The notes under the pieces were generated by a model. The model saw only the letters and a program-made list of their open reading frames with translations. It was not told the DNA's origin and searched no databases. A stretch of 64,000 nt of DNA from Anthoceros angustus (taxonomy: Eukaryota; Plantae; Anthocerotophyta). The position numbers and the translations under genes are program-made. Location of the stretch: positions 124,001 through 188,000 of the forward strand of contig MU008177.1 in the NCBI GenBank assembly GCA_010909165.1, written 5' to 3'. Shown in pieces: positions 3,257 to 53,474 of the stretch (positions are counted from its first letter, which is position 1; the number at the start of each line of letters is the position of its first letter).

Positions 3257-3677
3257 AGCGTCGGGGCCAGGATCAGGGTTGGAGCCGGGTCGTGAGCAGG
3301 TGCGAAATGTCGAGGGTTGGCAGCGGCGTCCCTGCTCCGCTCCTGCTCCTGCTCCTGCGTCTTGTGTGTCTTGCCATGCCGTGCTGCCATGGCTGCTGCG
3401 TGTTGAGTGAGCAGCACAACATGGAGCATTGCACCCGATCCTGCCTGCACGCCGCGGATGGTGACGAGCAGGGCTTCGGCTGAACCCTGAACGAGCAAGC
3501 CGAGCTCCGCCATTCTCAGGTATGCTTTCACGGCCAAGAAGGGCCTGCCGTGGCTCGTGAGCTCGGTTGTGGTGTTGGCTGTGTTGCAGCTGGCTGACGG
3601 TGTTGTTGTGTGGACTGGGGGCTGCAGGGAGGTGATCCGAGGGTAGGGCGGGGGCCGAGGAAGGGAGGCAGGGCACG

Positions 3678-5675
3678 ATGGATGCGGCGAGGATAGGGAG
3701 CTGGGACGACATGATCCAAGAAAGCTTCTGGGCCGGCTCGGTGGACACGGGCGGGGATCCGGGGCCGGACGAGGCCAGGGAATCGCCGGTGCAGCTCAAG
3801 CTGCGGGCGCTGATGGAGAATGTGTGCGACGCGCGCTGGACCTATTCCATCTTCTGGCAGCTGACGGGGGCAGGCACGGCGCCCGGCCAGCGGACGCTGG
3901 GGTGGGGAGACGGGGAATTGCGGCGGAAGGAGTCGGACATGCAGACGGAGCGGACGGTGGACAGCGAGCAGCAGGCGGCCAGAGTCCGGGTTCTGCAGGA
4001 GCTGGAGCTGATTGTGAACCGCGGGGTGCGGGATACCAGCCAGGACCTGTCGCAGGATTTTGTGTCGGATACGGAGTGGTTCTTCCTGTACAGCATGTTG
4101 CAGACCATTGCGGAGGGGAGCTGCGTGCCCGGGAGGGCTTTGATGAAGGCCAGCTATGAGTGGCTCAACGAGCCGGCCAACCCGGAGCTGTGTGACCGGG
4201 CAAGGTTTGCGGAGATGGCGGGCTTGCAGACTATTGTGGCTTTGCCGGTGTCGCATGGGGTTGTGGAGCTTGGTTCTACCGAGCGCATCTTGCCGGATGC
4301 GGGGTTTATCGATAGGGTGGAGCAGCTGTTTGAGAGAGGGGATGCCCGCGCGGCCTGGCAGGTCGGGGACTACCACATGCCGCCTGCGAATGAGGAGGTG
4401 GAGACGCTGTCGTACCTCAACTCGGACTTCTTTGGGAATGGAAACGGGGTGCCTCAGGCCATGTGCCACCCTAAGGAGCACGACTACAACCAGCAGCAGC
4501 AGGTCAGGCAGTTTCCGGCCCAGCAACAGGTGATGACGGCTTCTGCTGCTGACGACTTTTTTGGGGAGTATTTTCCCTTTCTGAATTCCATGGGCATGGA
4601 CATCCCCACCTTCCACCAGAACCCCTTTGCCATGCCTGAACAGAAGGGATACGGTGTGCCGCAGCCCAGGATACATGTCGAGATACAGGCTCACACTCAG
4701 TGTCCGCTGGGGGCCGGTGAGATTCTGAACCCGACGGCGGCTGTGGTTGCCCGCGCACAGCCGCTGTCGCTCAAGCCTGAGGTGGCTCCTGCCCAGAATG
4801 GGCTGCACATGTTGCAGGACAAGCCTCAGCATGTGAAGCAGCAGTACTCCGAGGGTTTGGGGCTCCCCTCTGCCACCAACATGGGCTCCAGCATTGAACC
4901 GGATCAAGAAATCGACTCTGAGGCTGAGGTTTCCTTCAAGGAATCTGTGGAGAGCAGTCTCATCAACGGTCAGAAGCCTCCGCGCAAGCGAGGTCGAAAA
5001 CCGGCTAACAACAGGGAGGAGCCTTTGAACCATGTGCAAGCTGAGAGGCAGCGTCGTGAGAAGCTGAATCAGCGCTTCTATGCTCTCAGGTCTGTGGTGC
5101 CCAATGTTTCCAAGATGGACAAAGCGTCCTTGTTAGGTGATGCCATTGCGTACATCAAGGACTTGCAAGCCAAGTTGCAAGATTCGGAGGTCAAGATCAA
5201 GACTTTGCAGACGCAAGCGCCGCCGCAGATGGACAAGGCAGCCATGGATGCGGCCTCCAAGGGTGATCAGGAGGCTGGGAACACTGGAGCAGTACCCGGT
5301 GGAAGGTTGATGTCAGTGAGCAATCGGGTTCCACCAGATCAGAAACCGTCCATTCAGGTTGACATCTGTGGTATGGAGGTGTTCATCAGAGTTCGGTATC
5401 AGAGGGAAGCGTATCCTATCACACACCTGCTGTCAAGCTTGCAAGACTTGCAGTTGGACGTCAGAGATGCAAATATTTCTACTGTGGACGGCTCCACCGT
5501 CCATCATGTTGTGTCAGCCAAGTTGAAAAAGGAGCATGAAGAAATTAAGAAAGAACTGTTTGTGGAGGCTCTGGACAGAGCATTTCAGTTTACTCCCTTG
5601 CCTACCAAGCCAGACAATGGGAGCATTGGCAACAGCAAGCAACCTAGTACAAGATTTGCAGAACCTCAGAGGTAG
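3678..5675 (+). CDS. MYC2: MYC2-like bHLH transcription factor (subgroup IIId/e), intronless, 665 aa
   Basis: bHLH-MYC_N motifs ([46 protein letters not shown]) plus [54 protein letters not shown] bHLH and an ACT-like C-terminus. Confidence 0.95.
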
Positions 5676-6506
5676 ATATTCTGTCAGCGAACATAAAGTG
5701 GTGTCCTCCTCCTTGTAGAAAGAGTGCCTTGTCTAGTCGGGTGCTGAAGTTAGCTGTAGAGAGAAAGATGGAGTTGACCCTATCTCTTGTATGATGCAGG
5801 AGGCCTGTACACTAAGCGTACTCTGTAAGATGGGTGGGATAGCATCCGTTTAGTGGTGCCTGCAGAGGGTGAGGAGCGTATGCTTCTCAGGCTTATGTTC
5901 CTCTTGCACCTACTGGGATACAATTTATTCAGGGTGCGTGGTAGGTAACAGGCCTCCGAACTTGTAAATCAGCTTGTTGCTCCTCTTGTTTCAGAAGAGG
6001 AAAGTTTGCCAGCCTTCGAATTAAATTTATTTTGCCTCTCTCTTGTGCGTGTGTGCAACAGATTCATCTACTGGGGGAAACCACCTACAAACGGGGGCAC
6101 ATGTGCCAATTCATGTACAAAGGGGCTAAGCTGGGGGATGTATCAGTTGGTGGTTTGTGGGCATCTCTCGACCTATTCAAGGCTATATGTAAGGGAAACT
6201 TTTGGCACATGTAGACAATTATATGGAGGGTAGAATGTCGTACGCAGGGTCGGAGCATGATCCCTGTATAACAGAATGCGCTGCTACTTGTTGGAAAGTG
6301 ATCATGTAACATAACACATCTGAATATCGGCTGGGTAGTTGAGACGGGGCAATTCTTAGGTGGGGGTGGTATGATGTTAGATGAAGCCAATGGCAGGTCT
6401 CGCGTGTGGGACAAGGTTCTGGGGCAATAAATGCTACCCACAAGTCTCAGACTCTCATCAAACCCACACCTTATGATGATATCAGGATGGAAAAGCTTGA
6501 TACCAC

Positions 6507-9274
6507 TTATTCCCAATGCTCACCCTCACTCTCGTTACCCACTTTATTATCCCCTATCCTTGCTCTCGCTGTTACTTGGAATGCCGGAATTTGCAACGCG
6601 AAGCGACGTGGAGAGTCGGTCGTGTATTCCCCCACCGGCTCGCTCACTTGCAGCCGCTCCGACAGGACCCGAGTGACGACCGTCATAGTCGGGCGCGCAT
6701 GGCGGACGGCGGCCAGGCAAGCCGCGGCCAGGCGCAGCAGCAGGTGCAGGTCTGGCGCGTAGTACAGCCCCTCCAACCGAGGATCGACGACCGAGTCCGC
6801 GGCCGCCCGCCCCGCCAACCAGGGCGCCGCCCAGACCGTGAGCATCCGCCCGTCCAAAAACGCCGGTCGCCCGCTCACCAGCTCCAGCAGCAGCACCCCG
6901 AAGCTGTAGACGTCGCTCTTGGCGGAGCACAACCCGGACTCCTCGTAAGCCGGGTCGATGCACCCGGGGGATCCCCGCACCAGCGTGTGCTGCTCGGACC
7001 CCCCCGTGTTGTTGCTACCCGGCGTCGGCCCGGCCGAGGCCTTGGACAGCCCGAAGTCCGCCAGCTTCGCCACGCCCCACTTGGACAGCAGCACGTTCGC
7101 CGATTTCACGTCCCGATGCAGCACCTGCGGGTTGCACCCGTGGTGCAAGTACTCCAGCGCGCTTGACACCTCCAACGCCACCTTCATCCGGCACCTCCAC
7201 GGCAGCACGTTATCCGGCTGGTTGTGCAGCCGGTCGAACAGGCTCCCTCCTTCCAGGTACTCGAAAACGAGTGGCCATGGCTCTGTATTTGTCGTTGGTC
7301 AGTGCATGCAAGACAGTCAGTCGGCAAAGACCCTCGCGTGGGAGGAGGGAGGTTCAGACAGAGTTCGAATCCGGGTCGCGCTCCGCTTACCAGCATCCGA
7401 GCAGTAGCCGATGAGATTGACGAGGTAGCGGTGATGGATCCTCATGAGAATGCTGGCTTCCTTGACGGACACATCCGCCTTGGACTTGGCCTTGCTGGCG
7501 GTGTCCACCCGACTCACCTTCACGGCTCCGAGGCTCCCGTCCGGGAAGGTGGCGCGGTAGACGACGCCGTAGCCCCCGGCTCCCACCCGAGTGCTGAAGC
7601 CGTCCGTGGCCTTGTCCAGCTCCTTCCACGTGAAGGGGCGCACCTTGGACATGGCCACGGCGTCGTCTGCCGCGCCCGAGAGCGGGGGCTTGGATGTGCT
7701 GCCGCGGCAAAACCGCACGGCACAGCACGCCAGGCCCAGCAGCAGCACGCCGAGGGAGGCGGGGGTTATGAGCAGCAGCAGGAGGAAGGCGGGGTGGCGG
7801 CGGGCTCGGGAGGCAGGGTGGTTGTTGAGGTCCGGGGGGGAGGCAACGATGGCGTTGAGCCTGACGTCGTCGATGGCCGGCCCGCACTGCGAGGCGGTGT
7901 CGGATTCTAGGGCATCCCTGGAGAAGGCGATGACGACGGGGTTGGCCAGCGTCGTGAGGTTGAGCCGGCGAGAGGTCCAGCCCATGGTGGAGTCGGTGTT
8001 CTTTCCGGCGTCGTAGGTGAAATTGGTATGGCCTTGCGGCACGGCGTTGTAGAGCTGCACGCGGAGGTGGCGCAGGGTGGAGTTGGGGCAGTGGGTGTCC
8101 GAGCGCGGGTGGCCGGACATCTTGAACGTGAGGGTGAAGTTAGAGTTGGGCGGCAGGGTCAGGGTCTGCGAGATGGCCGCCGACCCGTAGCCGGCCATGG
8201 CGCAGCTGAGGTGGATGGAGCTCTCCCCACTGGACGCATACCACTTCAACTGCTTCACGTACTCGATGCACAGGTTATGCAGCGGATCGGAATCCCTGTC
8301 CAAGGAGGCGTTCAAGTGCGCCGCCATCTCCGCGTCCCGCACCACCTGCCATGACCTGATGGGGAAGAGCGTGAGCCGGTCCGCGATGGTGAAAGAGCCC
8401 TGCCCCCTGTCCACCCGCACCGTCGTGTGCTCGAAGCTTCCGTCCCGGATGAAGTTGATGGTAGGATCGGGACTCGCAACCGGCACTACCTCATGCGACT
8501 GCAACTGCCACACGCACACACACGCACACACGGGCACAAAACAAACGTTGTGAATCCACACGAATTCCGCTTCCGCACAAGGCCGCGGGAGTACACCAAA
8601 CGGAACGGCGGCATTACCTGCGGCACGGAGGAATAGGCGTAGTAGCTGTCGACAGGCAAGACCCTGAAGAAGGAAGTGAGCGAGCTGTTAGGTTGCAGAA
8701 ACAGGTGGTACTTCCCTCCCCCACCACTACTGTTACCCGCGATGAGCAGCGGCTGGGACCAAGAGATCCCGCTCTGCACCGACCCATCATCCAGAAAGTG
8801 CCACTGCTGTGCCTGCGAGCCCGAATTGCACGCCCGGAGCTCGAGCTGGAACGGGAACGGATCGCCCTCGCCCTCGGGGCGGGGCACCCCGGCCACGCAC
8901 ACGTCGGGGCCGGTGATGTTGGCGTGATCCCGCATAACGATGGCCCCGGACTGCTCCCGGGACCCGGAGACGTAGGTCCATACTTCGTTGGGCTCGAACG
9001 CCCAGCAGGGGTAGATCCCGACCTTCAGCTTCTGGTAGGTGGTGAGATTCGAGGGATGCGGTCCCGTGAAGGCGTTGAGGCAGAGGCGGCAGACGGGGAG
9101 CCCGCTCGACTCCTCCGGCTTCCCTAGGATGATCCACGACCGCTGCCCGTCCGAGTCCGCGCTCACCCCGCTCCCGATCGCCGTGGCGATGGCCGGGACC
9201 CGGGCCCGGGCCCCGGCGCACAGCAGCAGCGCTGCCAGCAGCAGCGCCGCGGCCCAGCTCCGCATCGTGCCCAA
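6507..9274 (-). CDS. Receptor-like kinase: signal peptide - ricin-B-type lectin - DUF642/choice-of-anchor-C galactose-binding-like domain - TM - RD Ser/Thr kinase
   Basis: Exons ~9274-8618, ~8498-7391 and 7282-6507 with compatible phases. Signal peptide (WAAALLLAALLLCAGARA); QxW-like repeats (LCLN...C...NEVW; VCV...LRAC...AQQW); DGSFE...ISQTL...MGW...CGPAIDDV domain; TM; kinase motifs GAGGYGVVY, AVK, HRDVKSANVLL, DFGLS, GCIDPAY, DVYSFG. Confidence 0.88.
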
Positions 9275-10184
9275 TGCTACGCCTAGCCGCGCGGCTCAAC
9301 TAGCGGACTCCGGCCGGGGGCCGGGGTCGTCCAGGCTGTTGCCTCGGACAGCGGACGGCACCGGGGATGGACCCGAGGTTCTTGCGTTGCTGCGCGGCCA
9401 AGTGTCGTTAAACACCATGAAACGACAGACGCTGTCGACGAACAACCTCACAACATTGCTCCTGCCTTTTATCTCGTCCAAGAGATTCAACTTGGAGTGA
9501 TTGGCCAGCAAGAGGGTAGGGACTTCATCACCTGGGCTTCTTTCAACCAACACGCCAGTGTGCGTGCGCTTCCTGTGTTGGTGGAAATCGGGTGCCAGTC
9601 AGAACTGCGCACATGTGATACACTTCCTGCAATGGACAGCGTGGGATCGCTAGCCGGTTCGTTGTTCATTCCAGAAAATGTGTGAATGTGTGAATTCCCA
9701 CCTGACCCTTTCCTCTTGCATCCTGAAAGCTGTGTTTCCATCTGCCAACGAATTAAGCATACACACCTTATGTGGAATCACACGCGTAATTAGAATTTAT
9801 CACGAAAACATCTTGTACACAACAATGTCCCTAGGGGATCTGAATATCTGCGCAGAGAGAGGGCGAGGGCGAGTTGCAAGAGGAGCGTTTGCCTGCAGAG
9901 CAGGGCCGATGGGGCTGTAATGACGAAGCACCTTCAACTACGGCTCACCTCAGCTTCTCGAATTTGTCAAGGTGAGTTAAAAGGTACATATATGAACATA
10001 TGAACAATTTGGGCAGCTGCCACGATGCTATACCCTATGTGCGGCAACTCGCCAAAAAAAAACCTAGAAGCACACACAGGTCCGTAGGGACATAGGATGT
10101 TGGTTGGCTATGCCACGGACACATCTTTCAGCTGTTTGGGGCTGCATCCTTGTCAAGGTTGCTCTTCTGTCGCGGTTTCTGCTG

Positions 10185-51800: not shown

Positions 51801-53474
51801 CCGATTATCTCTATGAGCATTTAGGAAATGAACTGAGTTTGTGATTTCTTCGCTCTGAATCACGCTCCGGCATCTTCGAGAATTCCAACTGTGAGAAGAA
51901 TCCTCTGACTTACAGAGTCGAGTGGAGAGTCTTGACTTGTGTGCAACCTAGCCTATTTGATTTAGTCCCAGCAGTTGTACATAGGTCTGCTTTACCCCAA
52001 CGGTGCATTACTCCTGATGTTTCTGTGCCAGGGATCCAGCACTCCCGATGCCCTGTCAGATATCGGCCCAACATTTTATACTTACAACGAGCTCTTCATT
52101 GCTTCAAACGGGTTTTCGGAAGCAAACGAGCTGGGACGTGGTGGGTTTGGGTCAGTCTACAAAGGGGTGTTTCCGGATGGATCGCTTGTGGCTATTAAAC
52201 AGCTGACAGTAGAGACTCAGCAGAGCAGAGAAGCTTTTCGAAAAGAGATTGCATTAATCTCCAGCGTTCAGCATCGGTAATGACCTAAACAACCTCCTTG
52301 TACAAGTCTGTTGATGCATGCCTACCACCAGGCTTTTAACCGTGTTACGACACTGTCACCTCTACTCCTGTTTATAGGAATCTGCTTGCCGTTAAGGGGT
52401 GCTGCCTCGAGTCTGAGCTTCCCCTTCTGGTTTGCGAGTATATGCCCAACGGCAGCCTGGACAAACTACTTCATGGACGACATTCCCGATCTCTGGACTG
52501 GCCGTCAAGACGAAATATTGCAGTCGGAGCGGCATGCGGACTAGCCTACCTCCATGATGAATCCAAGTACCGTATCATTCACTGTGACGTAAAACCTGCC
52601 AACATTCTGCTGGACAAGGACTTCAATGCCCGGATAGCAGATTTTGGTCTTGCAAGACTGTACGATGATAGCAACACCCATATCACCACCACTACGCTCC
52701 GGGGCACCAGGGGGTACCTTGCTCCAGGTAAAGCTTTTAACAGGCGTGCTGCTGCATACTCTGTAAACACACAGACTGTCCAGTTGAAATCCTTCTAACT
52801 TTCCGACATGACCAAAAGCAGAGTACGCCCTCCACCTCCAACTCTCAGAGAAGGCAGATGTATACTCCTTCGGCATCGTCCTTCTGGAGCTTGTGAGTGG
52901 AAGACGCCTTGTGGACCAGGACTTGCCCTCGGAGAAAGTCGTCCTGGTGGAGTGGGCTCAGCAACTGGGCCAAGAGGGCTCCTCCGCCCTGCGGCAACTG
53001 GTGGATCCAAGGCTCAGCCTCCAGTTCCCTGAAGAGAAGGAAGTACTCAACATGGCCACAATTGCAAACTGGTGCACCCAACCTGCACCCAGCTTGCGGC
53101 CCAAGATGCGGACTGTGTGGCTCATGCTCAACGGCACCATCGACATCCCAGAGCTCCCCAAGAACGGACAATCCAAAGGGGTAGCCGTCAAGCGCATACT
53201 GTCGGACAGCTCTGTCCTGCCCATACCGGATTTCGACCTTGGCAGCAGTACGGAGCTGCCTCAGGCCAGCTCCAACACCACTGCCTCCTCCTCCTCCTCC
53301 ACAACTCATACCACTGCCTCATCTTCCAGCTCCGGAGCAGCCTCCCAGTTTGTAGAACATCAGGAGACGCACCTTGCCAACCTCCTCTCCAGAGATGGTC
53401 TGGCATACTCATCTCGCCTGTCACATGCCCATCTTACATCCTACACTTCCCTACAGGCACATCGGGACAACTGA
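48808..53474 (+). CDS. LRR-malectin receptor-like kinase (LRR-VIII-2-like architecture), non-RD (HCD)
   Basis: Signal peptide, LRRNT (W..GSDPCTTW...C), LxLxxNxLxGxIP repeats, malectin (FAVNAGG...LYQSMR...VKLHFAEI...RVFDVVVQG...GPMLSAFSV), TM, and kinase GRGGFGSVYKG, AIK, HCDVKPANILL, DFGLA, GTRGYLAPE, DVYSFG. Confidence 0.92.

Follow-up and report, generated by a model that had tools for sequence, protein, structure and literature searches.

Does a hornwort carry a receptor kinase that joins a ricin-B-like lectin module and a DUF642 domain in one ectodomain? Receptor kinases diversify by ectodomain swapping, and knowledge of them comes mostly from seed plants. The question is raised by a gene in a 64,000-nucleotide stretch of the genome of Anthoceros angustus (assembly GCA_010909165.1, contig MU008177.1, positions 124,001 to 188,000), which we call the window and whose numbering is used throughout; the gene spans 6507-9274 on the minus strand. 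The first-pass annotation, made from the letters of the window, had proposed a single spliced gene for such a receptor. We found the gene to be expressed, spliced and frame-conserved, with three exons and about 845 amino acids in total, and its product is predicted to be a type-I receptor kinase that spans the membrane once and belongs to the receptor-like kinase (RLK)/Pelle family. In our judgment the locus is best explained, with somewhat better than even confidence, as a type-I RLK/Pelle receptor with a single DUF642 domain and a probable ricin-B-type trefoil, that is, as a candidate carbohydrate sensor.

The first step is whether the parts belong to one gene. The single spliced gene of the first-pass annotation stood, with its start corrected and its three exons now defined. 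Translation probably begins with the ATG at position 9265; the TTG at 9274 merely opens the open reading frame (ORF). Exon 1 (8618-9265; 216 codons, ending in phase 0) encodes the start, the signal peptide and the N-terminal ricin-B-like module. Exon 2 (7391-8504; 371 codons plus one base, ending in phase 1) encodes a linker, the DUF642 domain, the transmembrane (TM) helix, the juxtamembrane region and the kinase N-lobe. Exon 3 (6510-7282) encodes the kinase C-lobe with its HRD, DFG, DPxY and DVYSFG motifs and a C-terminal tail, and is followed by the stop codon TAA (6507-6509). Both introns are of the GT..AG type. Intron 1 (8505-8617) is 113 nucleotides (nt) long, and intron 2 (7283-7390; 108 nt, phase 1) interrupts the kinase domain after the 'GYC..' strand, where it splits a GAG codon. 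A second in-frame acceptor is found 6 nt downstream of the predicted acceptor of intron 1, which gives exon 2 a start at either 8504 or 8498. A GT/GC-rich simple repeat occupies 8493-8537, at the 3' end of this intron, and was masked in the comparison with read contigs described below.

Public sequencing contigs from runs X1 (organism A), X2 (organism B), and X6 and X8 (organism C) were compared with positions 6300-9500. Because the X1 contigs show no mismatch to the window, organism A is probably its source species. A 1784-nt contig from this run covers 6300-7282 and 7391-7810 with an exact joint at 7282|7391, so that intron 2 is removed as predicted, which shows that run X1 includes RNA. A further X1 contig (record 6) aligns to 9306-8618, and the alignment stops exactly at the predicted donor of exon 1; the 26 letters beyond it differ from the intron. 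The orthologue in X2 diverges by about 7% in exon 3 and up to 14% in the exon 1 region, as in a related species that is about 90% identical. Its 2395-nt contig (span 9413-6879) covers 9413-8671, 8487-7399 and 7285-6879 and lacks intron 2. The interval from its exon 1 match to its exon 2 match is 106 nt long, compared with 183 in the genome; this exceeds the 70 nt expected after splicing by 36 nt, or 12 codons, and the frame is therefore kept across the two exons. An X6 contig also lacks intron 2, and the X8 sequence, which retains both introns, looks genomic.

The reading frame is preserved in the two related species as well as in the window organism. The indels between orthologues are of 12, 3 or 2+1 nt, or are compensating +1/-1 pairs, and the frame is therefore kept. 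In the kinase region, 23 synonymous and 13 non-synonymous changes were counted among the 36 scorable changed codons, a sample that takes in 40 of the 319 differences detected.

These data bear directly on a rival reading, which we consider very improbable, that the model fuses a secreted lectin-like exon 1 with a separate DUF642 kinase gene, or that the locus is decaying and without function. No organism A contig was reported across intron 1, the intron is present unspliced in a contig of low depth (3.9x), and coverage at the 5' end is far below that at the 3' end. Nor did any organism A sequence show the acceptor of intron 1 directly, the simple repeat there being masked, and this is a point against our gene model. 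Exon 1 is nonetheless part of the same gene and not a separate one, because a single X2 contig runs from exon 1 to exon 3 with the interval between exons 1 and 2 shortened and in frame; this is the opposite of what the first-pass annotation had named as the finding that would overturn it. The confirmation of splicing by RNA-seq that it proposed was thus obtained from contigs for intron 2, exactly, in X1 and for the joining of exon 1 to exon 3 in X2. Further arguments against two genes or decay are the end of the X1 match precisely at donor 8618, the frame kept open in three species, the excess of synonymous changes, and the same collinear order of domains on an independent plant contig, L001, discussed below.

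The second step is the membrane plan, for which the signal peptide, TM helix and intact RD kinase proposed earlier were borne out by hydropathy, Pfam and motifs. The predicted signal peptide (9203-9265) is about 21 amino acids long, with a hydrophobic core at residues 5-23 (KD19 1.82) and a putative cleavage site after its final A-R-A. Hydropathy places a single TM helix, followed by basic residues, N-terminal to the kinase (7719-7796; KD19 maximum 2.49 at exon-2 residues 240-258), and a motif scan found nine N-x-S/T N-glycosylation sequons, all of them before this helix. Profile and homology searches were run on the exons separately; Pfam Pkinase scored 25.7 bits on exon 2 and 82.2 bits on exon 3, and the GxGxxG, VAIK lysine, HRD, DFG, DPxY and DVYSFG motifs were found. 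Because all catalytic motifs are present, the kinase is predicted to be active and of the RD type. It can be placed by its sequence in the plant RLK/Pelle family, because its nearest solved structures in the PDB are those of plant RLKs as well as receptor-like cytoplasmic kinases (SYMRK, PBL2, FERONIA, BRI1, BIK1 and BAK1), followed by IRAK1/4. The closest database kinases over both lobes in the word search are the SPARK-domain RLKs P0011 (from Taxus) and P0012, with 39-43% identity; in the absence of a tree, identity of about 40% is too low for an assignment to the SPARK-RLK subfamily. The activation segment at 6960 (exon 3 residue 107) reads G-C-I-D-P-A-Y in the window; the orthologue of organism B has G-Y-I-D-P-A-Y there, as is usual in plant RLKs.

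The third step is the ectodomain. Its membrane-proximal module, a single galactose-binding-like DUF642 domain (7851-8465), matches Pfam PF04862 with 44.9 bits against a gathering cut-off of 27 (E = 1.4e-11), over profile positions 37-156 of 157, in agreement with the DUF642-like domain of the earlier annotation. An insertion of about 50 amino acids follows its N-terminal DGxFE motif. The nearest ESM-atlas clusters are 100% DUF642, Streptophyta first (score 0.96, 176 shared features, recognition 2609) and bacterial next. TIGR04362 (choice-of-anchor C), the bacterial DUF642 subtype, gave 50.6 bits, below the NCBIfam cut-off of 120. The plant and bacterial subtypes thus score similarly, and the ESM-atlas neighbours favor the plant one. 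A word search with region 1-260 of exon 2, its DUF642 part, gave no scoring match among candidates of 204-649 amino acids, and one with the 414-amino-acid ORF returned only kinase matches, none with DUF642. No DUF642-bearing relative of 228-725 amino acids appeared in the word searches, and a PDB sequence search with the domain gave no match. On the strength of the profile match, a DUF642 domain in the predicted receptor ectodomain is confirmed.

The N-terminal module (8645-9145) contains cysteines, is rich in predicted beta structure and is probably a diverged R-type (ricin-B-like) beta-trefoil, a reading drawn from Pfam, the PDB, the ESM-atlas and a homologue. We think it fairly probable, from sequence comparison, that it is a strongly diverged ricin-B-type trefoil in which only the middle subdomain has kept the canonical Cys...QxW. 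This middle (beta) repeat (8771-8848), recognized by hhalign, has the form Cys-x7-QQW and is followed by DDGS. Among 1.84 billion representatives, the true ricin-B proteins P0004 and P0006 were matched at E values of 4e-6 and 2e-5, and hhalign aligned the canonical repeat with their ricin-B domains at a probability of 93% (E = 2.7e-7); the repeat matches every repeat of both proteins. The weak PDB sequence matches of the module are all B chains of type II ribosome-inactivating proteins (16 of 16). When the module and its homologue were combined in one profile, six of eight weak PDB matches were R-type lectin domains, including the lectin domains of N-acetylgalactosamine (GalNAc)-transferases, which align to the alpha region. 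The ESM-atlas features of the module point to ricin-type clusters at 0.95, with low recognition (2042). In a global MAFFT alignment, all three segments (alpha, beta and gamma) have their Cys and Trp in line with those of true ricin-B domains.

Several results limit this evidence and have to be set beside it. Pfam Ricin_B_lectin (PF00652) gave only 17.3 bits (E = 0.0055), under its gathering cut-off of 29, and all significant ricin-B signal traces to the one 25-amino-acid Cys-x7-QQW repeat. The alpha segment, Cys-x6-EVW (an ExW variant), is in register, with a score reached by 5 of 100 shuffles. Neither the gamma subdomain, aligned separately by hhalign, nor an internal test of the alpha and gamma repeats versus the beta repeat was significant, and a repeat hidden Markov model built from 12 true ricin-B subrepeats detected only the beta repeat in the module. 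AlphaFold2 gave an all-beta but unreliable model from a two-sequence alignment (predicted local distance difference test, pLDDT, 29.9) and again, all-beta and unreliable, when four true ricin-B domains were added (pLDDT 39.5; predicted template modeling score, pTM, 0.33); Foldseek on the second model returned noise only and no match. Both models and the Foldseek search weigh neither way on the fold. Of the QxW-repeat beta-trefoil in the first-pass annotation, one canonical QQW subdomain therefore stood, a second (ExW) was marginal, and the third went undetected in a fold that was not confidently modeled; the profile check it had suggested succeeded for DUF642 and fell short for ricin-B.

The same results can be read differently. 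The protein may be a DUF642 RLK whose N-terminal module is a lineage-restricted, disulfide-bonded, beta-rich domain with one QxW-like motif, and whose ligand is a protein or peptide, for example, pectin methylesterase (PME) or its inhibitor. We hold this to be possible but doubtful. It would fit the confinement of statistical support to one repeat, the sub-threshold Pfam score, the lack of a confident fold, the low ESM-atlas recognition, the length of the module (about 165 amino acids versus 125-130 for a trefoil) and the PME interaction of seed-plant DUF642 proteins (PMC13516882), but it leaves unexplained why independent weak signals all indicate R-type lectins and nothing else and why the Cys and Trp of three segments fall in the ricin-B register, and a lone trefoil subdomain would be unable to fold by itself. 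The diverged ricin-B-type trefoil is the reading that we carry forward.

A CARDB/Ig-like domain was also considered as the identity of the module, since proteins with CARDB repeats (P0001, P0002 and P0005) ranked highest in the large protein search, with E values from 1e-10 to 1e-5. Their scores are sums of 6-12 repeats, each contributing 2-7 bits, on a single 40-amino-acid stretch; against ricin-B repeats the same stretch scores 16-20 bits apiece, and Pfam CARDB found nothing in exon 1 at E <= 1. We rejected this candidate as extremely unlikely.

The fourth step is the distribution of the architecture. The collections of proteins searched do not contain the window's own protein. The N-terminal module had nine matches in the 1.84-billion library, and its sole full-domain relative was P0003, with 28% identity over 146 amino acids; this protein itself matches Ricin_B at 20.8 bits (E = 4.5e-4), under the same Pfam threshold of 29. 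A 5.8-billion word search with the A1 profile recovered P0003 only, and a metagenome contig scan with A1 found no relative. P0003 sits on L001, a 5-kb Logan contig from run SRR33208280 with a guanine-plus-cytosine (GC) content of about 48%, which comes from an independent plant of lower GC. Downstream of P0003 on L001 follow, in the order of the window gene, a DUF642 domain, a TM segment and the N-lobe of a kinase, and the kinase intron of L001 has the same position and phase as intron 2. The claim that the receptor is lineage-specific is thus right in part, as the same architecture occurs in a clearly different plant.

L001 also has an in-frame stop at 3500-3575, between the N-terminal module and DUF642, with no obvious canonical splice pair, and one frame change at 3985-4122 within the DUF642 part. 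The stop and the frame change could reflect short introns, assembly error or a pseudogene. We therefore do not claim that this copy is intact.

What, then, might the receptor do? The ectodomain (the DUF642 domain and probably the trefoil-like module too) would bind carbohydrate. Candidate ligands are a microbial glycan and polymers of the plant's own wall (pectin or hemicellulose, by parallel with the DUF642 proteins of seed plants); the signal would be relayed by ligand-dependent association and by phosphorylation through the predicted active kinase. Such a role would be functionally analogous to that of lectin-, malectin-like- or WAK-type wall-sensing RLKs, and glycan sensing is a reasonable inference. 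A point on the other side is that the ligand of DUF642 need not be a glycan, because the binding partners of DUF642 proteins in seed plants include proteins such as PME. A broader proposal, which we put forward as possible but less likely than not, is that the gene represents an undescribed class of double carbohydrate-binding RLKs (R-type trefoil plus DUF642) that is old in land plants, occurs as a small family in hornworts and in at least one other lineage, is absent from seed-plant proteomes, and senses the state of pectin or galactan in the wall, or else the glycans of cyanobacterial or fungal partners.

Elsewhere in the window, the presence of a CYCLOPS gene is no evidence for a link of this receptor to symbiosis. 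A second RLK/Pelle-type kinase gene at 51981-53153 (+ strand) has at least three exon pieces and 32-42% identity to the kinase described here, and no similarity to the ectodomain of the latter. The convergent neighbor at 3678-5675 (+ strand) is an intronless ORF of 665 amino acids for a MYC-type basic helix-loop-helix (bHLH) transcription factor, with bHLH-MYC_N at 140 bits, HLH at 48.6 bits and an ACT-like C-terminus. In X1, the contig of the kinase transcript reaches about 590 nt beyond the stop (about 5919-6510), toward this gene, and a 3289-nt contig of organism C (X6 record 14) runs from the 3' exon of the kinase leftward into the bHLH side, which suggests that the two genes have long or overlapping convergent 3' untranslated regions.

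The significance of the locus lies in an expressed, conserved hornwort receptor that places DUF642 on a signaling kinase; no receptor role is known for DUF642 in seed plants. The domain is thereby found outside the wall-protein family that has been called 'spermatophyte-specific'. The gene offers an entry point to RLK diversity in hornworts and to two questions, namely, what the ligand of DUF642 is and how early land plants keep track of their walls or partners. Because a single relative is detectable among billions of proteins, the N-terminal module is also a good target for structure determination.

In comparison with known systems, the membrane-proximal domain can be set beside the DUF642 wall proteins of seed plants, which carry two DUF642 domains in tandem. 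Arabidopsis BIIDXI (At4g32460) and TEEBE (At2g41800) and rice DFOT1 belong to the same Pfam family and, like the predicted ectodomain, are extracellular and N-glycosylated. These are soluble wall proteins, whereas the window protein carries a single, insertion-bearing DUF642 domain that is joined to a TM helix and a kinase, and so is not of the soluble tandem type; by phmmer, pairwise similarity to seed-plant DUF642 proteins was too low to score. A 2026 review calls this wall-protein family spermatophyte-specific and associates it with the methylesterification of pectin and with binding to PME (PMC13516882).

With the R-type lectins (ricin, abrin and mistletoe B chains, GalNAc-transferase lectin domains and CBM13) the N-terminal module shares the Cys...QxW subdomain signature. 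It differs from them in its sub-threshold score, single canonical subdomain, greater length and unconfirmed fold. The window gene encodes no toxin A chain and is not a gene for a toxin.

Previous reports also bear on the novelty of the combination. DUF642 is listed among the domains of unclassified fern RLKs and receptor-like proteins in a 2025 paper on fern immunity, which mentions in passing a DUF642-kinase of Taxus chinensis (A0AA38CBH3) in InterPro (PMC12512272). Like the window gene, these cases from land plants other than angiosperms join PF04862 to a kinase of the RLK type; no N-terminal ricin-like module is reported for these proteins, a comparison made by description only. A survey of CBM13/ricin-B modules names protein kinases, without detail, among the enzymes associated with them (PMC11212257). 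The statement that ricin-B and DUF642 domains are normally not found in receptor kinases was thus overstated. No ricin-kinase combination turned up in the literature searched on lectin evolution and lectin RLKs, the portion of the RLKdb preprint consulted contains no ricin term and names DUF26 as its sole DUF, and the literature searched describes no receptor class, and contains no RLK-related paper, in which ricin and DUF642 occur together.

The closest kinase domains belong to the SPARK-domain RLKs of the ARK1/ARK2 type (PMC8237591); no Pfam match to the SPARK domain itself was found on exon 1 or exon 2 at E <= 1. The same holds for the L-, G- and C-type lectin, LysM, malectin and WAK ectodomain families, in agreement with the earlier claim that the ectodomain lies outside the standard lectin-RLK classes. 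The window receptor is not a member of those lectin and wall RLK classes, and we infer its functional likeness to them. It shares their general plan, as found in L-, G- and C-type lectin RLKs, LysM RLKs, malectin-like CrRLK1L/FERONIA and WAK: an ectodomain that would bind carbohydrate, a TM helix and an RLK/Pelle kinase. Set among these systems, its double-ectodomain design is unusual, although not wholly unprecedented.

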